64,000 nucleotides of DNA, taken from positions 186,001-250,000 of the IMG/VR virus record IMGVR_UViG_3300035070_002626; one strand, 5' to 3'. Under the pieces are notes generated by a model. It did no database searches. It was given only the letters and a program-made list of their open reading frames with translations, and was not told the origin of the DNA. The position numbers and the translations under genes were made by a program. Positions 15,115-59,784 of this stretch are shown piece by piece (the stretch's first letter is position 1; every line of letters begins with the position of its first letter).

Positions 15115-17349
15115 TTATCCTCGAGCTAGTGTTAATAATCTATCTAGCTCTGATTCGATCATTGGGTCACGCTCTGCTTTTAGTGCAGGTTTTCCTGTGT
15201 CAATGTCTGTTACTTCTGTCATATCTTCATCGTCGAGATCTTGTTGATTTGCTTTAGTAAGAGGCTCTTCCTGCGTCGGATCTTCATTTATGGATTCATT
15301 TGCACTAATAAACTTTTCGCCTTGTTTCTCAATCAACTTTTTAAGTGCAACTGCTCCTAGCACGAGTGCAACTGCTGCGCCAATTTCAAATTTGTTGTCG
15401 ATGAGCATTTGTGCATATTCTTCACCAATTGCACTTTTAACCCAATCCCATCCTTGATCCATATAATATGCCCCAGTTGCGCCTGCTGCAATTTTACCAG
15501 CATGTTTTTTTAGTAGCCATTTTAGTACTGGCCATGCACCTCTTGCTGCTACAAATTTAAGAACCCATACTGCTGCTGCTACAAGTGGAGCCATTTCTGT
15601 TAGTTGAGCTTCACTCATAAACGGACGCAATTCTCTTGCGCGGCTTGGGTGCTTTAACATTCTTAAGCCTTTAGATTCACGTTGTCTTATAACTTCCGGA
15701 GTTACGCCCATTGCACTTGCAACCTGTTGCAGTGTGTATTCTTTTTTAAAAGGCCCTATACCAAATCTTGCTTGTATAACTTTTTTAATTTTTACATCAT
15801 CAATTGCATCTAGTTGTGCTGCTAAAACTTTTTTTAATTTTGCACCGTCGACTCCGCTAAAATCAAAATCATCAATGGTGCCGCCAGGCATATCTACTTG
15901 TGTTGCTTTTTTGGTAATATCTTTAGCATCTACTGTATCGTCTGTTGGGATACGTACACCTTTGTATTGAGGACTGTTACCTGCATATGGCATTGCTTCT
16001 CCTAGTGGCTTAAAGCCTCTAGTACTGCCAGTTGGTTCTCCGTTTGGTGCAATTTCTCGTGTGCCACCGAGGTTGCTAAGTGGTCTAGCCTGTGGGCGCA
16101 TGCTACTTGGTCGTGCCATCGGACGCAGGCTAGTCATTGGTGCATTTTCACCAAGCTCGATGTTGAATTCTTTGAGTCTGGCTAGTACCAGTGGTCTACA
16201 ATCGGCATCGGGATTATCCAAACCCATTTCGTAAATGTCATCAAATAGTTCATCGTCGCCAATTAGTCCGTACAGTTGCTCAGTTGCAAATTCTCCAGCT
16301 GGGCCACAATGCAATGGTTCTTTCATAAGTTCAGCTAGTTCTGCCATTTGTTCTGGTGTGCCAGGCAGTGCCCATGTACCTTCGGTAATACTGTCTGCCC
16401 ACTGTTCAAATACGTCAGCTTCTTTCATGTTAGTTTCCTTTATTTTTGCTATTATTGGCAAAGCTTCTTCAATTCGACTATCAAGTGTGTTTGTTGAAAA
16501 CACTTCTCTTACCTTGTCAATGGTTTCATCAAGATCAGTAATTTCCATTGGATCCCATGATGCAAAGATATCTTTATAGCCCTTACGACTAATCATTTTC
16601 TTTGCTTTGCGTTTAAGGTCTTTATAGTGCCTAACTGCATCTTCAGCAATGCTTACTGCATCAACATTTTGACCAAACGATTTACTTTTAGTAGCTCTGA
16701 TAAATTTACTTAATGTTGCTATTTCATTAACTGTGTCACTGATGTGTTGACCAATCTGATCGTATGGATTACCACCTTCAGTTACATGCCTTGCCATTGC
16801 TTTACCGCCGCTTATACTACGGAATGGCATCTTAAATCTTTCGCCTTGACTGTTTTCAACAAACAAACTTTCAATGTTTCTAAAACGTGCTTCGCCTTCG
16901 CCTAGTTTTCTTGAATGTTTGATAATAAGCTTTGCTGGGCCTTGTTTATTATAACTAGTTTTGTTTGTACCGTTCCAGCCTTCAGCTAACTGGGCCATAC
17001 TTTTCATTGAATACTTTAATCTATTCATGTTGTTAAGGCTAAATGTATACAAGTTACGCTTTGCTATATTTCTAATAACTGCAAGAAAATCATACCAATC
17101 ACCGCGGTCATCACGCTCCATTGTGCGTCCGATACTGTCGCCGTAGTATACTTCAATTTTGTCTTCGCCGTCTATTAGAATGACTACTGTCCCGTAATCT
17201 TTGTTTTCAGTTTTAAAATTAAACGAAATCAAGTCAGCATCAGCTGCATTCACAGTAGGCTTGCCCATAGCGTTAAGTGCTTTAGGGTCAAAGTCTCGTG
17301 TTACTATTGTGTCAAAAATTTGTTGTGCTGCGTTGTTATCTTGTGCCAT
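15115..17349 (-). CDS. Large modular probable virion/internal-head protein containing a sigma-70 region 4 domain
   Basis: 744 aa immediately after the terminase; RFGIG...YTLQQVA...VTPEVIRQRESKGLRMLKHPSRARELRPFM aligns by eye to the RpoD C-terminus; modules separated by hydrophobic-x-E motifs. Confidence 0.75.
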   Translation of the reverse strand: MAQDNNAAQQIFDTIVTRDFDPKALNAMGKPTVNAADADLISFNFKTENKDYGTVVILIDGEDKIEVYYGDSIGRTMERDDRGDWYDFLAVIRNIAKRNLYTFSLNNMNRLKYSMKSMAQLAEGWNGTNKTSYNKQGPAKLIIKHSRKLGEGEARFRNIESLFVENSQGERFKMPFRSISGGKAMARHVTEGGNPYDQIGQHISDTVNEIATLSKFIRATKSKSFGQNVDAVSIAEDAVRHYKDLKRKAKKMISRKGYKDIFASWDPMEITDLDETIDKVREVFSTNTLDSRIEEALPIIAKIKETNMKEADVFEQWADSITEGTWALPGTPEQMAELAELMKEPLHCGPAGEFATEQLYGLIGDDELFDDIYEMGLDNPDADCRPLVLARLKEFNIELGENAPMTSLRPMARPSSMRPQARPLSNLGGTREIAPNGEPTGSTRGFKPLGEAMPYAGNSPQYKGVRIPTDDTVDAKDITKKATQVDMPGGTIDDFDFSGVDGAKLKKVLAAQLDAIDDVKIKKVIQARFGIGPFKKEYTLQQVASAMGVTPEVIRQRESKGLRMLKHPSRARELRPFMSEAQLTEMAPLVAAAVWVLKFVAARGAWPVLKWLLKKHAGKIAAGATGAYYMDQGWDWVKSAIGEEYAQMLIDNKFEIGAAVALVLGAVALKKLIEKQGEKFISANESINEDPTQEEPLTKANQQDLDDEDMTEVTDIDTGKPALKAERDPMIESELDRLLTLARG

Positions 17350-18937: not shown

Positions 18938-18974
18938 TACTTATCTACTGTGTGTGGCCTTATGCAGTTAAATA
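18938..18974. promoter_or_regulatory. Back-to-back late-type promoters (TAAGTA on minus for terminase; TAAATA on plus for HNH)
   Basis: Minus: GATAAGTA ttaac ATG(18932). Plus: TTAAATA at 18968-74, 8 nt before ATG 18983. Confidence 0.5.
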
Positions 18975-18982
18975 CTGTTAGC

Positions 18983-19528
18983 ATGGAAAGTACATTAATA
19001 CTAGCACCCGACTACCAACCAGTAAGTTTCTTGCCACTATCAACAATTAGTTGGCAAACAGCAATTAAGTTGTTTTTCCTCGACAGGGTAACTGTACTGG
19101 AATGGCACGATGACTGGGTGGTACACAGTACAAAGTTGGACATACGAGTACCAGCAGTTGTTGTGTCCAATCGAGGATTTAAACGTTCTAGAAAAAAACC
19201 ACGTTTTACCAGGCAAGGATTGTATCTTAGAGATGTATACACTTGCCAATATTGCGAAGAAGTTGTTGGAAAAAAAGATTTAACGTTGGATCATGTTATA
19301 CCAATTAGCCGAGGTGGCAAAACAACATGGGAAAACAGTGTAACTGCATGTGGATCGTGCAACTCGAGAAAGGGCAGTGCTCTGTGGAAACCAATCAAGC
19401 AACCAGTTGCACCAGATTATTGGGATATTGCAAATCGTATTAGAAATATCCCAATGAAAATACGTCACGAAAGTTGGCAAAAATACATTGGTGCAACAAA
19501 TGTAACTGTTACTCGTCTATCTGCTTAG
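18983..19528 (+). CDS. HNH endonuclease (McrA-like, Zn-binding)
   Basis: TCQYC...LTLDHVIPISRGGKTTWENSVTACGSCNSRKG. Start reassigned to MESTLIL downstream of the promoter. Confidence 0.88.
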   Translation: MESTLILAPDYQPVSFLPLSTISWQTAIKLFFLDRVTVLEWHDDWVVHSTKLDIRVPAVVVSNRGFKRSRKKPRFTRQGLYLRDVYTCQYCEEVVGKKDLTLDHVIPISRGGKTTWENSVTACGSCNSRKGSALWKPIKQPVAPDYWDIANRIRNIPMKIRHESWQKYIGATNVTVTRLSA

Positions 19529-19802: not shown

Positions 19803-20249
19803 CTAAACTTCAACCACGCCTTCGGCAATAAGTTTGGCCCTGTTAGCCATGTGATGTTCTAGTAATTCTTCTTTGCTGCCACCCATGTAAGGAACTGCAT
19901 GTCCTTCTAGCATCATTATCTCTGTAACAGGCATTGTCCTATCCTGTGGTGCATAGTATACACTAAAGTCGCCTAGGATACGTCCAAATTTGCCTTTCAT
20001 GTCTTCGCCGTCTCGTGCTATCTGTGTTTTAAGCACAAGGTTTGGCGCTTCTAGTAGTTCTATCATACGCTTTTTTGCTGCTAATCCAAACTTTTTTTCT
20101 ACTAAATCTCTTGTGCGGCTTTCGGGTGTGTCGATACCCATGATTCTCACACGTTCATCTCTCATCCAAATACCAAAACCCAAGTCAATGTCAACATCAA
20201 CTGTGTCACCGTCAACGACATTTACCAATTTGGCCTTATATTCGTACAT
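19803..20249 (-). CDS. Thermonuclease (staphylococcal nuclease-like)
   Basis: VVDGDTVDV, RVRIMGIDTPES, KGKFGRILG, LEGHAVPY; AGGAG SD. Confidence 0.88.
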   Translation of the reverse strand: MYEYKAKLVNVVDGDTVDVDIDLGFGIWMRDERVRIMGIDTPESRTRDLVEKKFGLAAKKRMIELLEAPNLVLKTQIARDGEDMKGKFGRILGDFSVYYAPQDRTMPVTEIMMLEGHAVPYMGGSKEELLEHHMANRAKLIAEGVVEV

Positions 20250-21144: not shown

Positions 21145-21522
21145 TTACCTCGGATATCCTTTAAATGCTATAACTGGGCTTTCGGTGTGAACACCGTCAG
21201 GTTCTCGACTGCCTGTGTGCGACCCGTCTTCTTTACTAACCATCCCAAGTGCAGCAAACGCTTTCTTTGCCATATCTCTTTCTACATCAGAGAACGGGCT
21301 AATAAGACCATCGCCGCCAATCCAACTTTCTGGATCTGGCATGTTTTCATTGTTTCCTTCAGCGTCCATTCCGGCCATGGCGATAGTAGCACGATACATA
21401 TCGTAGTAGCCTTTGCTTCTCACATGGCCAGGACTTGCTGCTTGATGCACATGGGGCGCTTTGCCTTTCCTGTGCTTAAAACGCAAGCCTCTTTCTTCCT
21501 GTAGGAATTCAATAGCTCTCAT
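21145..21522 (-). CDS. Hypothetical protein with capsid-targeting-like N-terminus
   Basis: Begins MRAIEFLQE/E. Confidence 0.55.
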   Translation of the reverse strand: MRAIEFLQEERGLRFKHRKGKAPHVHQAASPGHVRSKGYYDMYRATIAMAGMDAEGNNENMPDPESWIGGDGLISPFSDVERDMAKKAFAALGMVSKEDGSHTGSREPDGVHTESPVIAFKGYPR

Positions 21523-21812
21523 TAGATATTATAAACTCCGCTGTTTGCACTTGAAGCAGTGCCTACTTCGGCAGCTGTAGAATTACTACCAACAATAGTA
21601 AGCTGATTGCCGACACCTATATACATGTATCTTGTGTTGTTTGCAGGAATAACTATTGGCGCACTATAGATAGTGTCTGCATTTTCATTTGGCTTACCTG
21701 CAAGAATAACTTGTGCTGTTACGCTGTTACTGCCAGTTGAGATCATTGCTTTATCTGTAGCCCAGGCTTGTGCTGAAATTGCACCTGCGTATACTGTTGA
21801 TTGACTAGCCAT
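21522..21812 (-). CDS. Small beta-rich hypothetical protein
   Basis: 96-aa ORF translationally coupled to its neighbours. Confidence 0.55.
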   Translation of the reverse strand: MASQSTVYAGAISAQAWATDKAMISTGSNSVTAQVILAGKPNENADTIYSAPIVIPANNTRYMYIGVGNQLTIVGSNSTAAEVGTASSANSGVYNI

Positions 21813-21822
21813 TTATTTTTCC

Positions 21823-22749
21823 TTATGATGTAATCTTGCTTACTGGTTTTTTACTCCACATACGGCAACTCCAGTAGCCTGCTTTTGTTCTATCTTTTTT
21901 ATCTGAGCAATTGTGTCTGGCACGGAAGTTCTTACGAGCGTCTGGGTTGTCTCTGCGGATTTCCATGTTAGGATCGCCAAAGTTTACTTTTTTAACATTT
22001 CCTGTTTTAGGATCTTTTACATACACTTTAAACTTTTTAACATCGCCCCTTGATGGCTTGCCAAGCTTAACTTCACGTCCTTGGTATTTGGCTTCATTGG
22101 TTTTGCCATACTCCAAGGTTTGCATCACATTGTTAACCATTGCGCTAACATCACTTGAGCCCATTTCTTCATCATCAGCATGAAGTTCAGCTTCTTGTTC
22201 AATTGCGTCAATCATACGGTCAACACCGTACTGTCTCACCAGATCGCTAAATCCCCCCATGGTCATGAGTCTACGCTTGATAATGTCTGCTACATCGTCT
22301 GAATCTTCAACAAGTTCAAAACTTTCAGCAAGTGCAGTGTGATGTTTTTTCATATAGAATGCAGCAGTATCTTTGTTACCCATGCGTTCGTGAAATTTTG
22401 CTTGATCAGAATAGTTAGTTGTAACCTCGGCTGATTCAAAATAATTTGTTGCTGCTTCTCTACCGTGCTTTTTAATGAACTCTGCTTTACTCATGTTTTC
22501 AGCATCGTCAAGTTGAGAATCTTTCATCTTGCCTTCGGATACTTCGTCGTCGTCACTCATTGTGCAGCCGCAGCCTTCGAGCACCGATAGTCCATATTCA
22601 TCTGCTTCAATAACCACACCATCATCGTTGTGACTTGCAACATCAAACTCTAGTGCTAGTTCTTCGTTAACAACAGCGACAAATACATCGCCCTCAATCA
22701 TAAACGACTGTGCTCTTTCGCTTTCGGAGATGTATTTTGTTAAACTCAT
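21823..22749 (-). CDS. Modular hypothetical protein with a basic C-terminal domain (DUF6321-like)
   Basis: N-terminus MSLTKYISE/S; C-terminal KFKVYVKDPK..KVNFGD...FRARHNC...AGYWSCRMW. The DUF label is from memory. Confidence 0.6.
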   Translation of the reverse strand: MSLTKYISESERAQSFMIEGDVFVAVVNEELALEFDVASHNDDGVVIEADEYGLSVLEGCGCTMSDDDEVSEGKMKDSQLDDAENMSKAEFIKKHGREAATNYFESAEVTTNYSDQAKFHERMGNKDTAAFYMKKHHTALAESFELVEDSDDVADIIKRRLMTMGGFSDLVRQYGVDRMIDAIEQEAELHADDEEMGSSDVSAMVNNVMQTLEYGKTNEAKYQGREVKLGKPSRGDVKKFKVYVKDPKTGNVKKVNFGDPNMEIRRDNPDARKNFRARHNCSDKKDRTKAGYWSCRMWSKKPVSKITS

Positions 22750-24170
22750 TTTGTTTTAAACTCTTGATAAAGTGACATTAGGTGACTTTCAGTGATATCT
22801 TCAAGATTGACTGTGTTATTACCCATACCCTGCATAGCCAATGCATTGTCGCCAGGGTTGTTAGGATTAACTTGCTGCTTCTGTCTGTTAAGACCACCAC
22901 TAATTGTATTAACAAGTGTTTCGGTATCAGCTGTTGCAGTATCGTCAGCAGCATTAGCAAAATCTTGATCTTCGGCAACAGCTTCGTGTTGCATACCAAG
23001 CGAACCAAGTCCTGCTAGCTGTAGCAATGAACCAAGTTTGGCTGCATCTTCGTCTGTTGCAGTAACAGTTAGGCTTGGGCCGCTTTGATCATTCATACTA
23101 ACGTTGATATTCATACCTTCCATTAGTCTCATTGCATTTTGAGCAATATCGTTGCCTTCGTACACACTTGCATGTTTGTACAATGATTTACCGTTGCCAC
23201 TTGCATCTGTTGCAACTGCGCCGGCTGTTGTTGTTTCTTCAACTTTTTCTTCCTCGTCGACTTGTACATCATCATCTAATTTGTGTGCTGTGTCTTTACT
23301 CATTGTAGTTTTGTGTGTTTTGCCGCCAAACTCGAAATCTTTTTTACCTGCACGTGCTGCCGCCGCTGCCGCTTGATTAAATGCATTTTCGTCAATGTCA
23401 TCTTCGTTAACTGCATCTTCGTTCATGTCATTGTGTCTACGGAAGTCTGCCACGAAGTCTTGTAGTGTATCGCCATCTAGGTAGCGCACTAATTCGCTGA
23501 AGACTGGGTGAGCTGCACAGTCTAATTCGTCGCATAACTCCCAAATAGACTCAGCACTATCGCCCACTGCTTCTTCAACTGACTCTTCCCATGGTGCTTT
23601 CTTTAGAGATACTTTTTTTCTTTCTTCGCCACGCTCTGGTTCGGATGCTTTTGCTAATGCCTGCATGTGTGCACGTTCATCTTCATCTGATGATTCGCTT
23701 ACTGCATTACAATTGCAATGCTTGCAATCTGGTGGACAGTTACAGTCTTCTGCTTTAACATCACTGCCGCAGCACTTGTCCGAACAATGTGTGTCTTTTG
23801 CTTCCGCAACATCTTCATCATCTAACACTACTTCGCTTGCAATTCTACTAGCAGCAGATTCGGCAGTTTCGCTTTCGCCGGCCGCTTCTTCAATTTCACT
23901 TAGAGGCACACCTGCTAGTTCAGCTAAACGTGACATCATAGCATCTTTAAGCTCAGCTTTGATAGTCCCAGCAGTTTCTTTAACTTCTTTGAGTTTGGCA
24001 AGGTTGTCCATGCTTAGTGCAGTGTCTGCAAAAATACTGTCATCTTCGGATATAGCTTTAGTTGATTCTTTTTTGAGGTTTTCAATATTACCAGCTGTGT
24101 CACTTTCCATGATAGGAGTTTTATTAGCAACGTCTTGTAATTTTGCGAGTGTTGTGTAAATGTTGTCCAT
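22746..24170 (-). CDS. Acidic modular protein (putative internal-head polyprotein) with a Cys-rich module
   Basis: 474 aa, very D/E-rich, many V/L/M-x-E junctions; HCSDKCCGSDVKAEDCNCPPDCKHCNCN. Confidence 0.6.
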   Translation of the reverse strand: MDNIYTTLAKLQDVANKTPIMESDTAGNIENLKKESTKAISEDDSIFADTALSMDNLAKLKEVKETAGTIKAELKDAMMSRLAELAGVPLSEIEEAAGESETAESAASRIASEVVLDDEDVAEAKDTHCSDKCCGSDVKAEDCNCPPDCKHCNCNAVSESSDEDERAHMQALAKASEPERGEERKKVSLKKAPWEESVEEAVGDSAESIWELCDELDCAAHPVFSELVRYLDGDTLQDFVADFRRHNDMNEDAVNEDDIDENAFNQAAAAAARAGKKDFEFGGKTHKTTMSKDTAHKLDDDVQVDEEEKVEETTTAGAVATDASGNGKSLYKHASVYEGNDIAQNAMRLMEGMNINVSMNDQSGPSLTVTATDEDAAKLGSLLQLAGLGSLGMQHEAVAEDQDFANAADDTATADTETLVNTISGGLNRQKQQVNPNNPGDNALAMQGMGNNTVNLEDITESHLMSLYQEFKTK

Positions 24171-24181
24171 GTGTTTGTTCC

Positions 24182-24790
24182 TTAACTATCTGCTTTACCA
24201 GCGGAACTTTTCACCGTTGGAATTTTGTTTTTACCCATAATTGGGCTGTCTTTACCAGCTGGAGTATCGGTGTTGTAAACTGCTGGTGCAGTTTTACCGC
24301 CTGCAATTGTGTAATCACTTGCATACTCGTTGCCTACTACTTCACGCTGATAGGGGTCAGCACTGTAGTATTCGCTAGCTTCTTTAGACTCAGCACTATT
24401 TGGCCCGTATTCAGTACCAAGTAGCGGATTTGTTTGATCGTCATATCCATCACGCTCGTTGTCAACGCTGTCAGCATATCCAGCTTGTTGAATAATCATA
24501 TGGTTTGGATCCATACCCATTAACCTGGCAATCTGCATAATCTGTGGCGGAGTTGCTGGATAGTTAAACGATACGTCAAAGAACGACATGCCTTCGTTTT
24601 CAACACCTGGAAAATCTTGAAGTGTTTTTTGAATTGGTAATCTTTTTACATCGGACATAGTAATAACGTCAAACTGTTGAAGTTTTTCTTCTAGTGCGTT
24701 AATAAACTTTGCATCCGTATCACCGAGTATTTTGATTCTATAATCAAAAGTTTTTTTAGACTCGGTTAGATAGCTTGCGAATGATTTCAT
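24182..24790 (-). CDS. Hypothetical protein with a T4 internal-protein-like N-terminus
   Basis: MKSFASYLTE/S; own TAAATA (24812-17) and AGGGG SD. Confidence 0.6.
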   Translation of the reverse strand: MKSFASYLTESKKTFDYRIKILGDTDAKFINALEEKLQQFDVITMSDVKRLPIQKTLQDFPGVENEGMSFFDVSFNYPATPPQIMQIARLMGMDPNHMIIQQAGYADSVDNERDGYDDQTNPLLGTEYGPNSAESKEASEYYSADPYQREVVGNEYASDYTIAGGKTAPAVYNTDTPAGKDSPIMGKNKIPTVKSSAGKADS

Positions 24791-25349: not shown

Positions 25350-25380
25350 GCTGTATTTATAACCTTAAAACTCAGTGTTT

Positions 25381-25821
25381 TTATTTGCGTTTTTTACCTT
25401 GATGGAAAATATCATCCTCTGTAATAACTCTGAAAGTAATACCACTTCGTTTGCACCAAGCTTGTGCCGCTGCCCACTTAGCATAGTTAACAGCAACAAC
25501 AGCTTTTTCTTTATTTGATGCTTTGCTTTCAAGCACACTTTGTTTCTTGGGCTTGATTTCGATTAGTTCAGTAATAACTTTGTTGTGTCGATTTTTATAT
25601 TGTATAAGAAAATCCGGGATGTAGCGTGATTGCTTTCCAGTAAGTGGATTTCTATACGGAATAGCAAGACTTTCGCTTGCCCAACTTACAATGTTGTCAT
25701 TGGTATCGCAGAATCGCATAAATGCTAATTCCCACCCACTGCGATATTTAGGCACGCCTTTGCCTGAATATTTAGATTGATTTAGTACTGTGTAGTAGCC
25801 TTGTTGGTACTTATTGGCCAT
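25381..25821 (-). CDS. gp4: Head completion nuclease (gp4 / TnsA-like PD-(D/E)XK)
   Basis: YRSGWE, WASE, IPYRNP, RYIPDF, IEIKPKKQ, VNYAKWAAA. Confidence 0.85.
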   Translation of the reverse strand: MANKYQQGYYTVLNQSKYSGKGVPKYRSGWELAFMRFCDTNDNIVSWASESLAIPYRNPLTGKQSRYIPDFLIQYKNRHNKVITELIEIKPKKQSVLESKASNKEKAVVAVNYAKWAAAQAWCKRSGITFRVITEDDIFHQGKKRK

Positions 25822-31424: not shown

Positions 31425-31489
31425 TATTTATAAAAATATACGAATTCCAGCTCCTTAGAGTGCCCTTTGCAAAGGTTTTAATATAAATA
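31425..31489. promoter_or_regulatory. Divergent late promoters (sheath on minus; TATAAATA on plus for 31495)
   Basis: Minus TAAATA at 31425-30; plus perfect T4 late consensus TATAAATA at 31482-89, 5 nt before ATG. Confidence 0.7.
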
Positions 31490-53896: not shown

Positions 53897-53943
53897 TTAT
53901 AATGCTATCCTCTAAATCTTATTGTATTTATACTAGTTTTGAT

Positions 53944-56823: not shown

Positions 56824-58035
56824 TTATGAGAACGAAAGGTTCTGTACAGCAATTTCACCAACATAGTCACCGGCGTTGCCGAAGGACGATGCTGTGTTTG
56901 TTAGCTCAATATAGCCATAACGTGTCATAAAGGACACTACTGGCTCAAAGCTGGACGGATCAAGAACAACGCCTGAACTCATTAGCGGTACGTATGGGCA
57001 ATAGAACGCTGGTGCGTCTGTTTCACTTGCGCCTTTGTAGCCAACTAGTACTGGAGTTGTGTCGCCTGCGTATGAGTCACAGAATACACGCATTGTGCCA
57101 TTCAATGTACCAACGAATTTAGTATTTGTTGGTGCTTCAAATGTGCCTTCTGTTGTGCGAGCAAATGCACTTGTTGTTGCACTCTGTAGCACTGTAAGTG
57201 CAGCAGGGGAAACAACAGCATAGTTGCCTGCGCCACGACGTGTACGCTGAGCGATCAAGTTAGCTGTGCGGTTGATTAGAACTGCAAGAGCTGCATGCTC
57301 GTCACCAACAAATGTTGCTGTACCTGATACTGTGGCTTGGTTGTATGTAAACTCAGTTGCTGCTAGCGAACGTAGAGAAAGTAGAATCTCTTGGTCGATT
57401 TCAGCAGTAATCTCTTGAGCAAGTGCTGCCATGATTTCAGCTTCAACGTCAATGCCGTGCATGGCTTGTGCGTCTTGTGCTGCTTCAAAAGTCCAGCGAG
57501 CTTGTAGCTTACGTGTTTTTGCTTCAACAGCTTGCTTGAGGATTTGTACGGAAATCTGACGACCGCCGGAACCTTCAAGTACTGCTGTGTTTGCACCTTG
57601 GTATGTGTTCTGTGCATTTTGTACAACGCCTGCTGTCACTGTGGACGCAGAGGAGTAAGCTTGTGCAATTTTAAATGGTGATAGAGCTTCGTCACCAGCG
57701 GCTGTACTTGTTGCGGCTGCTGAGTTATCTGTCATTGCGTTTGCATAACGAACACGTAGTGTGTGGATTTGGCCAACTGGACCAGTCATTGGCTGAACGC
57801 CGACTAGTTCGTTAGCAATAACAGTTGGCATAACACGTCTGATAACTGGTAGGATAACACGGTTAAGTGTTGCTACGTTACCGGAAGAAGTTGAACCTGC
57901 TGTTGCGTTCTCTGCCAAGTGCTTGCGAGTGTTTTCTAGGATAACACCCATTGTTGAACGGCGTGAACCTTGAAGGCCTTCTAGGAGGGCTTCCTTGGTC
58001 TCACTCCATCTGTTTTCTAGTAGTTCTTGTGACAT
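56824..58035 (-). CDS. gp23: Major capsid protein
   Basis: RRVMP..IA.ELVGVQPMTGP.GQI..LR, VEAKTRKLQARWTFE.AQD, EIDQEI, FYCPYVPL, FMTRYG. Confidence 0.96.
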   Translation of the reverse strand: MSQELLENRWSETKEALLEGLQGSRRSTMGVILENTRKHLAENATAGSTSSGNVATLNRVILPVIRRVMPTVIANELVGVQPMTGPVGQIHTLRVRYANAMTDNSAAATSTAAGDEALSPFKIAQAYSSASTVTAGVVQNAQNTYQGANTAVLEGSGGRQISVQILKQAVEAKTRKLQARWTFEAAQDAQAMHGIDVEAEIMAALAQEITAEIDQEILLSLRSLAATEFTYNQATVSGTATFVGDEHAALAVLINRTANLIAQRTRRGAGNYAVVSPAALTVLQSATTSAFARTTEGTFEAPTNTKFVGTLNGTMRVFCDSYAGDTTPVLVGYKGASETDAPAFYCPYVPLMSSGVVLDPSSFEPVVSFMTRYGYIELTNTASSFGNAGDYVGEIAVQNLSFS

Positions 58036-58056: not shown

Positions 58057-59148
58057 TTAAAGCCCTGCTAGGCGCTTAAGATCGATAACGTTATTAGCGT
58101 CATTTGTTTGTGATCTTTGTTGTTCGGCCTTAACAGTTTTGTTACCAGTAGATTCAACAAGTGCTTCAGCTTTTTTAGTTGCTTTAGCTTCACTGAGTAC
58201 TGCTGGCAAATACTTCTCAAATGCGTTCTTTAGACGAGATGTTTGAACGTTTTCAAGAAGATTAATCATTACTTCTCTCTTTTGATCGTTAAGAGGAGAT
58301 AGTAGTTCGTCTAATGTAGCTTCCCGCTCATTAGCTTCACGAATGATTTTAATTTCATGATTTTTGCTCTCAACAAGCTTTGCGGCTTGTTTTTGAGCAG
58401 TAACGGCTTCTGCCAACTTAATATCTTTATCTTCAATAGTAGCTAATAGCTTGCGTACTTCTGCATTCTCATTGAGATGCGTGGCACCAAACTCTGTAGC
58501 ATATGCTTCAAATATACGGCGACCAAAATTGTTCTCACGAGCAACCTTGATATCCTCTTTAAGTTGACTTAGTTCTTGCGTAAGATGAGTAGCAACAGTT
58601 GTTGACATCTTTTTAGCAGATTCTTTTACAAATTTACTTTTTAGACTATCAAGTTGTCCACGTGCTTCGCTGACAAGTTTTACTTTAGTTTCAACTAAGT
58701 CTTTCTTGTCTGCTGCGAATTCCTTGATTTCTTCGGCCAAAGCACTTACAATAAAAGATTCTAGCTTACCAAAACCTTCTGCTTGTACTTTGCGATCTGT
58801 GCGTAGTTCGCGAAGCTCTTCGGAAAGTTTTGATACCATAAAGTTATTAAATTTATTAGCATTTTCTTTCATTGCTTTTGCGGCTTTTACACGGTCCTCT
58901 GCAAGCGCCTTTTTCTCTTCGTTAAGTTGAGCAATTTCTTCTTGCAGGCCTTCTGTTACCATTTTATCTAGGGCTTCTACCATCACTGTTTTATCATGAT
59001 CATAGCGTTGTGCAAACTCCTCACGAAGTTCTGCACGAACTGTTTCTTTGGTCTCATTCAACTTTGCTGCCCATTGTTCAGCAATAGCATTACGAGTATC
59101 CTCATTAACCAGGTCGCTATCTAGTAGTGGTTTAATAGCATCTAACAT
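58057..59148 (-). CDS. gp22: Prohead core scaffolding protein
   Basis: Long E/K/A-rich coiled coil between protease and capsid genes; ENNFGRRIFEA. Confidence 0.8.
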   Translation of the reverse strand: MLDAIKPLLDSDLVNEDTRNAIAEQWAAKLNETKETVRAELREEFAQRYDHDKTVMVEALDKMVTEGLQEEIAQLNEEKKALAEDRVKAAKAMKENANKFNNFMVSKLSEELRELRTDRKVQAEGFGKLESFIVSALAEEIKEFAADKKDLVETKVKLVSEARGQLDSLKSKFVKESAKKMSTTVATHLTQELSQLKEDIKVARENNFGRRIFEAYATEFGATHLNENAEVRKLLATIEDKDIKLAEAVTAQKQAAKLVESKNHEIKIIREANEREATLDELLSPLNDQKREVMINLLENVQTSRLKNAFEKYLPAVLSEAKATKKAEALVESTGNKTVKAEQQRSQTNDANNVIDLKRLAGL

Positions 59149-59157
59149 GCGATTCTC

Positions 59158-59784
59158 CTAAATCTTTAGGTCCCTAATCAAACGAGATACTTCGTCTGTT
59201 AGGTACTTCTGTATTTTGTCGTTTGACCCTGACTCCCTAGCCATTTCAAGAACCGAATGACCATGTTTCATGTTCAAAAGTCCTTCGTAAATAGCTTTAG
59301 GGTAAGCATTTGGAGCACTGGGCTGTGCGACTACATCGACAGTAACAATTTCAAAGTCACTGACGTGTCCGTTGTGTGGATCTACATTACCTGATCCACG
59401 ACTAGATACTCCCAATCGTACACCTGACTGAAGCATAGTTTTAACTAGCTCACCCATTGGTGTTGGAAGTATTTTTAGTTTTCCGTATCCATTTGGACCG
59501 TCCATCCACATACTAGTAATCATGTGACATACACGGTCTAAATTAATCTTAAGGTCATCCGGGTGATCAACTTCACCAAGGACGCTATTGCCTTCTTTGA
59601 TCTGTTCATTAAGAGTTTTAACTGCGTTAGAAATCTCACTCACAGGGTATATTCGCTCATTAGCGTTCTTAACACCACCTTGTATGCAGATGCCTTCCAT
59701 AAAGAGTTCCTTACCGTCTTTCCCTTCAACAAGTTGAATTTGTGCGGTTTCGAAGGTAAGGTTTTCTCTAAGATAAAGAGCCAT
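59158..59784 (-). CDS. gp21: Prohead core protease
   Basis: NANERIYP, LGEVDHP (catalytic His), TPMG, GVSSRGSG (catalytic Ser), DVVAQPSAPNA. Confidence 0.93.
   Translation of the reverse strand: MALYLRENLTFETAQIQLVEGKDGKELFMEGICIQGGVKNANERIYPVSEISNAVKTLNEQIKEGNSVLGEVDHPDDLKINLDRVCHMITSMWMDGPNGYGKLKILPTPMGELVKTMLQSGVRLGVSSRGSGNVDPHNGHVSDFEIVTVDVVAQPSAPNAYPKAIYEGLLNMKHGHSVLEMARESGSNDKIQKYLTDEVSRLIRDLKI

Follow-up and report, generated by a model that had tools for sequence, protein, structure and literature searches.

Mosaic proteins of exchangeable mini-domains joined by candidate prohead-protease sites in an uncultured marine jumbo phage

Three genes, g308, g474 and g744, are described here from a 64,000-nucleotide stretch of DNA (the window; bases 186001-250000 of the single 299,910-bp viral contig IMGVR_UViG_3300035070_002626) that belongs to an uncultured marine jumbo phage recurrent in seawater and estuary metagenomes. 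Their products are late structural-operon proteins in which conserved ends flank a variable string of small domains, and sequence comparison shows them to be mosaics of independent mini-domains (~30-130 amino acids, aa) with separate evolutionary histories. Every module junction reads V, L, I or M, then any residue, then a glutamate followed by A, S, G, D or T, and modules are exchanged precisely at these junctions. The motif is of the T4 gp21 cleavage type and is also over-represented in the scaffold protein and present in the candidate capsid propeptide. We think it moderately probable that many small proteins are packed in the form of a few precursors and separated by cleavage inside the capsid, which would be a polyprotein version of the T4 internal-protein system.

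The minus strand of the window carries the head and tail genes, which encode a gp23-type capsid protein, a prohead protease of the Peptidase_S77 family (S77), a scaffold protein, a terminase and a 1087-aa sheath protein. Judged by the capsid protein the nearest cultured relatives are Sinorhizobium phage Phosso, Vibrio phage 2.275.O, Pseudomonas phage PA5oct and the RaK2-like phages (~61-66% identity). Genes are named by the length of their product, so that g474, g308, g744 and g202 encode proteins of 474, 308, 744 and 202 aa, and likewise g125, g96 and g173; φ stands for a hydrophobic residue and a slash after the glutamate (E/) for the candidate cut. The strict form of the motif is [LIVM]-x-E-[SAGDT], and expected counts and z-scores come from composition-preserving shuffles of each of the 342 non-overlapping open reading frames (ORFs) in the 299,910-bp genome. 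The main features are:

59158..59784, minus strand: T4-type prohead protease (Peptidase_S77; Pfam PF03420, E 5.5e-26; T4 gp21 structure 5JBL, E 3e-14)
58057..59148, minus strand: scaffold protein (strict motif 15 observed against 3.5 expected, z 6.3, the genome maximum; C-terminus LKRLAGL)
56824..58035, minus strand: gp23-type major capsid protein (Pfam Gp23, PF07068, E 3.6e-99)
22746..24170, minus strand: g474, mosaic polyprotein (14 observed against 4.0 expected, z 5.2; 651 mosaic matches)
21823..22749, minus strand: g308, mosaic polyprotein (7 observed against 2.1 expected, z 3.7; orthologues L036-L041 differ by module insertions)
15115..17349, minus strand: g744 (13 observed against 4.6 expected, z 4.0; conserved N-domain, aa 1-~310, and conserved C-terminal tail around variable cargo)

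The junction motif

An earlier note on this DNA, made from the sequence alone, had proposed φ-x-E junctions in g308, g474 and the 744-aa protein and suggested a comparison with shuffled sequence; that comparison puts the motif far above chance in all three, and together with the scaffold protein they have the four top z-scores among the 342 ORFs. The excess in g474 and g744 is specific for glutamate and for exact spacing, since none of the decoys (Asp at P1, the reversed motif, spacings of 0 or 2, a polar P3) is enriched in these two proteins, all being at or below expectation (absolute z ≤1.9, with the Asp, reversed and other-spacing decoys within 1.3); g308 has a slight excess of the Asp decoy (z 2.2). 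When the same statistic was applied to T4 as a positive control gp22 (z 5.1), gp21 (3.3) and gp68 (2.5) stood out, those for gp22 and gp21 being similar to the values of this phage's proteins, and the T4 neck, tail, terminase and Hoc proteins gave z-scores near zero. Among 16 structural-region proteins of PA5oct, taken as a replicate, only the scaffold gp330 (z 3.5), gp278 (z 3.5) and gp281 (z 2.6) were exceptional, with neighbours at ~0.

The earlier note had described positions 21145-24790 as a run of polyproteins, and this stands for g308 and g474, which lie in that span, and extends to g744 beyond it. It does not stand for g125, g96 and g202; as these three and g173 are not enriched for the strict motif (g125 and g96 carry none), the polyprotein set is g308 and g474, plus g744 across the terminase gene.

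Each of the φ-x-E sites listed in the note was found at its place. In g308 these are ISE/S (7-10), VSE/G (70-73), YFE/S (103-106), LAE/S (140-143), LVE/D (146-149) and TNE/A (217-220), and in g474 they are IME/S at 20, ISE/D at 40, VAE/A at 121, VSE/S at 157, VEE/A at 198, MNE/D at 249, VNE/D at 254, VYE/G at 336, LME/G at 349 and ITE/S at 459. As a list of junctions it needs amendment: VEE/T (310-313), the best-conserved junction of g474, had been missed, and LME/G and ITE/S are less likely to be junctions because they lie inside predicted folded elements. The sites offered as internal calibration are likewise present, LAE/N at 40-43 of the capsid protein and LAE/A at 245, LSE/A at 318 and LVE/S at 258 and 330 of the scaffold.

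The junction glutamates are conserved even where the residues next to them vary. A motif glutamate is kept in 74% of the homologues aligned, compared with 42% for glutamates elsewhere (Mann-Whitney p = 1.7e-4). Flank logos drawn from unique contexts have a hydrophobic P3 in 18/22, 24/26 and 25/27, with V, L, M or I at P3 and A, G or S at P1', and in the two sets of upstream flanks P1 is a glutamate in 21/22 and 26/27; the downstream flanks had been anchored on their first glutamate.

In the capsid protein, which was also aligned to mature T4 gp23, the candidate propeptide sites are ILE/N (32-35) and the LAE/N already mentioned, the counterpart of the latter being LVE/N in PA5oct and LME/S in Vibrio phage 2.275.O. 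The capsid residues just past LAE/N (aa ~43-56; 57880-57920, minus strand), N-A-T-A-G-S-T-S-S-G-N-V-A-T, resemble those just past VEE/T in g474 (aa 313-325; 23196-23234, minus strand), T-T-T-A-G-A-V-A-T-D-A-S-G, and a likeness to this capsid stretch is also seen in PA5oct gp281 and in several small module proteins.

Module architecture and exchange

The g474 protein begins with a conserved 22-aa leader, has a second conserved segment at aa 43-123 and ends in a conserved C-terminal domain that follows four variable modules. The AlphaFold2 (AF2) model has a predicted template modelling score of 0.30 and consists of confident islands (predicted local distance difference test, pLDDT, 86-95) between linkers of pLDDT <50; of its 14 motif glutamates seven are within the 22% of the chain at pLDDT <50 (binomial p = 0.02). 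The parts are as follows:

24105..24170, minus strand: leader, aa 1-22, ending IME/S; in all orthologues, the following stretch being variable; pLDDT <50 at residues 19-24
23907..23927, minus strand: LAELAGV motif, aa 82-88, of the form L-x-x-L-A-G-[VIL] (LAG motif), as at the scaffold C-terminus
23694..23801, minus strand: eight-cysteine (Cys) module, aa 124-159, between VAE/A and VSE/S; found on >25 viral contigs in unrelated proteins
23571..23693, minus strand: module aa 160-200, ending VEE/A; alignments start or end at ~160-165 and 195-200
23403..23570, minus strand: helical module aa 201-256, ending MNE/D and VNE/D; pLDDT 86-93; alone in many matches
23235..23402, minus strand: module aa 257-312, modelled as helix/β-hairpin/helix, ending VEE/T; pLDDT 91-95
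22749..23234, minus strand: C-terminal domain, aa 313-474; C-terminal in most long matches; second LAG motif, LLQLAGL, at 23007-23027

A phmmer search of 1.84 billion representative proteins with g474 returned 651 matches, nearly all of them local, and the ends of the alignments cluster at ~118-124, 160-165, 195-200, 247-256 and 300-312. The earlier note had suggested aligning orthologues to see where modules are gained and lost, and the breakpoints do fall on the φ-x-E junctions, with ends kept and middles swapped. Orthologues of g474 retain the first 22 residues, the block around LAELAGV and the final 160 residues and exchange the middle, so that homologues with a C-terminal domain 67-73% identical span 339-585 aa. 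In the orthologue alignments E123, E200 and E312 are invariant columns, and among alignments covering E312 this residue is identical in 93%. The module at aa 257-312 occupies other positions in three orthologues (L004, P0006 and P0007), in the first of which the slot of the Cys module is filled by a different module. The Cys module itself has been found in dozens of otherwise unrelated proteins, including relatives of g744, variants of g308 and small proteins where it stands behind a 9-20-aa leader, and its upstream flank has the P1 glutamate in 21/22 contexts.

The exchange can also be seen between close strains, as three strains 98-99% identical to the window each have a clean insertion in g474. 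The first, in a 98%-identical strain, is of 65 aa at E200 between duplicated ESV(D or E)E/AVGDS junctions, the second is a 36-aa Cys-rich piece ahead of EEKVEE/T (E306-312), and the third is of ~100 aa immediately after MNE/ at E251. In a minor population variant aa ~196-257 are replaced by eight codons ending VKE/A, so that a junction is restored. Furthermore, when metagenomic contigs were mapped to the region the DNA of other marine viruses matched nt 23694-23804 only, which is exactly the Cys module between its two junction Glu codons. Such turnover of cassettes at the level of strains points to an arms-race function.

Megablast and tblastn searches of 50,697 phage records with g474 gave no match, and a Foldseek search of BFVD with the g474 model found only uncharacterised phage proteins at TM-scores <0.15, low scores that are expected because the model is a beads-on-a-string arrangement.

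From its N-terminus the g308 protein consists of a leader at aa 1-9, an N-domain at aa 10-72, a slot of variable content at aa 73-105, a helical part that is conserved (aa 106-219) and, at aa 220-308, a basic C-terminal module, and the inserts of its orthologues bring their own φ-x-E, LNE/D and LDE/D in L039 and VNE/D and LSE/A in L036. Its AF2 model, made from a 7-sequence alignment, was too poor for use (mean pLDDT 43.8). In the relatives of g744 the cargo slot holds a LysM domain and/or the Cys module; in one protein of this family (L007:2295-4166) a LysM domain (PF01476, E 2e-15) is followed by the Cys module. Besides LysM, DUF3008 is the only module type that Pfam recognised in large relatives. 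Two modules of these proteins are:

21826..22092, minus strand: basic module of g308, aa 220-308; net charge +17, isoelectric point (pI) 10.4; matches phrog_7595; on at least 599 viral contigs
15649..15786, minus strand: sigma-70 region 4 helix-turn-helix of g744, aa 522-567; PF04545 E 4.3e-8, above the curated cut-off

The sigma-70 region 4 module is flanked by LGE/A (449-452) and MSE/A (578-581) and is missing from the orthologues L007, L008 and L010; it could be an injected factor aimed at the host RNA polymerase. Both g474 (pI 4.3) and g308 (5.1) are acidic overall, the g744 segment with the sigma module has a pI of ~9.5, and the rest is acidic besides the g308 basic module. T4 has basic internal proteins and acidic internal peptides, which this split into basic and acidic parts recalls.

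In all, g474 contains at least six distinct segments, g308 at least five and g744 at least four. When the whole proteins and ten excised modules were searched against Pfam and PHROGs only sigma-70 region 4, phrog_7595, phrog_1245, phrog_13484 and phrog_351 were matched, and Pfam found no peptidase or enzymatic domain in g308, g474 or g744; searches of the ESM Atlas returned viral hypothetical clusters only. The seven proteins have no paralogues in the genome at E ≤ 1e-3, therefore the modules are not products of local duplication.

Protease genes, virion counterparts and gene neighbourhood

The form in which a module occurs is linked to the presence of an S77 protease. The g308 basic module was compared across 14 complete genomes, ten without S77 and four with it. 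In all ten S77-less genomes, which are those of pelagiphage and roseophage podoviruses and siphoviruses plus an archaeal virus, a Nitrosopumilaceae spindle virus, it is a free ORF that starts at or near the first residue of the module (8/10 begin MA-x-Y or MA-x-D), whereas in all four S77 genomes (HTVC008M, C48C1, Flavobacterium phage immuto and Melnitz-3) it stands behind a leader or other modules, the junction before it being LEE/A, LTE/A, LDE/G or MME/S. The difference is significant for these 14 complete genomes, which represent few independent lineages (Fisher p = 0.001), and in a conservative table of 18 genomes that includes large IMG/VR contigs (p = 0.013). This comparative evidence supports the view that the polyprotein or leader form accompanies genomes encoding a T4-type S77 protease. 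The two largest contigs with Cys-module proteins also encode S77, and for the five Cys-module contigs examined the CheckV completeness implies genomes of ~350 kb. In gp55 of Roseobacter phage CRP-6, a podovirus (L117:535-1224), the basic module forms an N-terminal fusion with an XkdF-type putative phage serine protease domain (PF14550, E 7e-18), an independent link between the module and head-maturation machinery.

The S77 gene adjoins the scaffold gene and the gp23-type capsid gene, and g308, g474 and g744 all sit in a tail-neck-terminase block in which genes are tightly packed and synteny is kept. The gene order is that of PA5oct, where tail tube and neck genes are followed by gp283, gp282, gp281, the terminase, gp279 and gp278. 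Here g202 is homologous to gp282 (BLASTP E 9e-14) and residues 89-303 of g744 to gp278, and gp281, which occupies the position of g474, shares with it only the KVEE/T-x-(S or A)-G-A motif, a C-terminal GDNAL...FK ending and LAG motifs. All three PA5oct proteins, gp278, gp282 and gp281, are annotated as detected in virions by electrospray ionisation tandem mass spectrometry (ESI-MS/MS), and the PA5oct scaffold is not so annotated.

Two kinds of possible targeting signal were found. Leaders that end in the motif precede g308 (9 aa, ISE/S), g202 (10 aa, LTE/S) and g474 (22 aa, IME/S), the last being slightly beyond the 10-19 aa of T4 and a candidate capsid-targeting propeptide. PA5oct gp333 (L120:2422-2643; 73 aa), which lies between portal and protease where T4 has genes 67 and 68, has been detected in virions by mass spectrometry (MS) and starts with an MKIN-type leader ending ITE/G, a leader of the same kind as that before the Cys module in small metagenomic proteins. 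The MKIN-type leader is probably what corresponds in this clade to the T4 capsid targeting sequence. In the phage described here a leader of this type ending φ-x-E also heads a 66-aa ORF outside the window (contig ~65300-65500, minus strand).

The second is the LAG motif, which ends the scaffold proteins as LKRLAGL here (58060-58080, minus strand), RRLAGIK in PA5oct and KIAGIRK in Vibrio phage 2.275.O. In the form L-x(1,2)-L-A-G-[VIL] it has only four copies among the 342 ORFs, two in g474, one at the end of the scaffold protein and one in a protein encoded beyond the window, and it is present in 37/150 g474-family matches against 0.5 expected, often with φ-x-E ≤9 residues downstream. We infer from this distribution a candidate core- or capsid-binding or targeting signal.

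The remaining features of the structural block are these:

24182..24790, minus strand: g202, conserved, with a single N-terminal LTE/S site; not a polyprotein
21145..21812, minus strand: g125 (21145-21522) and g96 (21522-21812), ordinary conserved small genes; not polyproteins
25354..25361, minus strand: TATAAATA, the T4 late-promoter consensus, just upstream of the packed run g173-g202-g474-g308-g96-g125
31425-31432 and 53925-53932, minus strand: copies of TATAAATA just upstream of the sheath gene and a 1128-aa gene respectively
19803-20249, minus strand: staphylococcal-nuclease homologue, embedded in the structural block
25381-25821, minus strand: TnsA-like endonuclease N-domain protein, also embedded in the block
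18950-19528, plus strand: HNH endonuclease, the sole plus-strand gene in the block

Orthologues of g125 and g96 are collinear (66-85% identity), and in L043 a g125-like segment is fused to a g308-like protein. The HNH and TnsA-like genes look like mobile endonuclease insertions. Four copies of TATAAATA in the window is the number expected by chance, and the plus-strand copy precedes a small plus-strand ORF; the placement of the three minus-strand copies, each before the start of a minus-strand gene, is suggestive if weak evidence of T4-like late promoters.

Proposed mechanism, alternatives and wider meaning

In T4 the gp21 protease cuts after the glutamate of L/I-x-E, cargo is directed to the core by short propeptides that are later cleaved off, and the core proteins are themselves cleaved at many points (PMC9026906). 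By analogy we infer targeting, cleavage, retention, injection and effector function in this phage. Precursors would enter the prohead core by means of their short N-terminal leaders and/or the scaffold-like L-x-x-L-A-G-[VIL] motif, where the S77 protease would cut after the junction glutamates in flexible linkers and free the mini-domains. Acidic linker pieces would then exit the head or remain as internal peptides, and folded or basic modules would stay with the DNA and enter the host, the g308 module of pI 10.4 and the sigma-70 region 4 of g744 being candidates. Sigma-70 region 4 in g744 and LysM in a relative would both suit cargo that acts at or after entry into the host.

A number of points weigh against this proposal. 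The S77 association draws on few independent lineages and has exceptions: one phage (L090; IMGVR_UViG_3300025018_002598, 83 kb, 95% complete) has no S77 match yet has an 11-aa leader ending FSE/S, and may use a different Glu-specific protease, and in two S77-positive genomes the basic module is at the N-terminus of a fusion protein. Some motif sites (LME/G and ITE/S) are in confidently folded elements, and as P3 and P1 residues travel with the modules their conservation may be partly inherited and not selected for cleavage. The phage is known solely from metagenomes, so that its presumed presence in the virion is supported indirectly, by the PA5oct counterparts, for which MS establishes presence and not cleavage, and a BLASTP comparison of g474 with gp281 was not significant.

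It is conceivable, though we consider it unlikely, that the proteins are disposable core components, accessory scaffolding that the protease shreds before DNA packaging as it does T4 gp22, gp67 and gp68, in which case the modules would not be cargo. Their strong acidity, like that of scaffold proteins, a motif density equal to that of the scaffold and the LAG motif that g474 shares with the scaffold C-terminus would all fit, as would the observation that T4 core fragments mostly leave the head (PMC9026906). However, the modules are conserved, independently folding domains that are kept as free genes even in viruses without S77, which would not be expected of mere filler; sigma-70 region 4 and LysM, both recognisable as functional domains, are found in cargo slots, and in PA5oct it is the relatives of these proteins that have been detected in mature virions and not the scaffold.

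A second possibility, which also seems improbable to us, is that they are intact multi-domain virion proteins in which φ followed by x, E and a small residue is a linker or boundary and a recombination joint that is left uncut, the proteins acting and perhaps being ejected as whole polyvalent proteins. The virion RNA polymerase of N4 and several polyvalent proteins are packaged unprocessed (PMC5512222), the motif residues are inherited along with the modules, and the S77-negative L090 has a similar leader. It would then be harder to account for a motif that is specific for Glu over Asp and for exact spacing, that also marks the scaffold and the capsid propeptide, that coincides with low-confidence linkers in the AF2 model and whose P1' is at or near the start of the free-standing copies in protease-less viruses.

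That these are non-virion proteins, either cytoplasmic precursors of small peptides (for example Cys-rich ones like ribosomally synthesised and post-translationally modified peptides, RiPPs) or early factors, which are cut by another protease and lie among structural genes incidentally, is very improbable, for whilst the eight-Cys module and short leaders are superficially like precursor peptides and podoviruses encode the same modules amid series of small hypothetical genes, the genes here lie close together in a tail-neck-terminase block of conserved synteny, their PA5oct counterparts were detected in virions by MS and the LAG motif is common with the scaffold. The RiPP-like reading in particular was set aside as no modifying enzymes are nearby and the PA5oct counterparts are virion proteins.

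The reading as a polyprotein payload has precedents in part. Internal proteins of T4-type phages are ejected with the DNA and their cargo differs among related phages (PMC9026906). With T4 IPI, IPII, IPIII, Alt, gp22, gp67 and gp68 the proteins described here have in common an S77 protease, short leaders ending in the motif and multi-site substrates, the last as predicted here. They differ in that T4 cargo consists of single proteins each with its own leader, whereas here unrelated mini-domains are strung together with a motif at every joint in three carrier families, and P3 is more often Val or Met than in T4. No Pfam or PHROG family of IPI, IPII, IPIII, Alt, gp67 or gp68 was matched, so the likeness would be one of mechanism and not of ancestry.

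Polyvalent proteins are multi-domain proteins encoded among virion genes that were predicted to be packaged and delivered with the DNA, and a proteolytic release of their domains has been proposed (Iyer et al. 2017; PMC5512222). They have two to fifteen distinct domains amid virion genes, as do g474, g308 and g744. Polyvalent proteins, however, have large enzymatic domains (methylases, ADP-ribosyltransferases, ParB-like nucleases, primases) and usually a metallopeptidase of their own; the modules here are of 30-130 aa, almost all are without a Pfam family and there is no peptidase domain, so that release would need the head protease in trans. In the jumbo phages phiKZ, 201phi2-1 and SPN3US the prohead protease cuts many head and ejection proteins after Glu and long propeptides are cut multiple times, with some fragments kept in the head (PMC10052503). 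The phiKZ-type phages differ in P3 preference and belong to an unrelated lineage with another capsid gene set, and theirs are paralogous ejection proteins with one mature part and not mosaics of mini-domains. MuF (SPP1 gp7-like) head proteins also fuse a conserved carrier to variable cargo, namely polymorphic C-terminal toxin domains that are exchanged between phages, but they have one C-terminal cargo domain, no chain of modules and no junction motif for a prohead protease. In searches of the literature no account was found of exchangeable mini-domains strung together through prohead-protease sites.

A broader and more tentative idea, which we put at rather less than an even chance, is that marine viruses share a traded library of mini-domains, which small phages and the archaeal spindle virus encode as free genes and which T4-like and jumbo phages with S77 deliver as ready-made cassettes, each with its own protease site, in capsid-targeted carriers from which they would be released for co-injection; the motif would then be a universal adaptor through which any small domain could join the virion payload.

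If cleavage does take place at the junctions, a single head protease with three carrier genes would suffice to pack and renew a changing set of small proteins, a payload that possibly includes a fragment of a sigma factor, in relatives a domain that binds peptidoglycan, and peptides that bind metal or DNA. The T4 internal-protein concept would then widen to a polyprotein strategy that is otherwise typical of RNA viruses, and hundreds of unannotated mini-domains of marine viruses would gain a testable context. Finally, the order leader, module, φ-x-E would suggest a natural design rule for placing foreign cargo in T4-type capsids.

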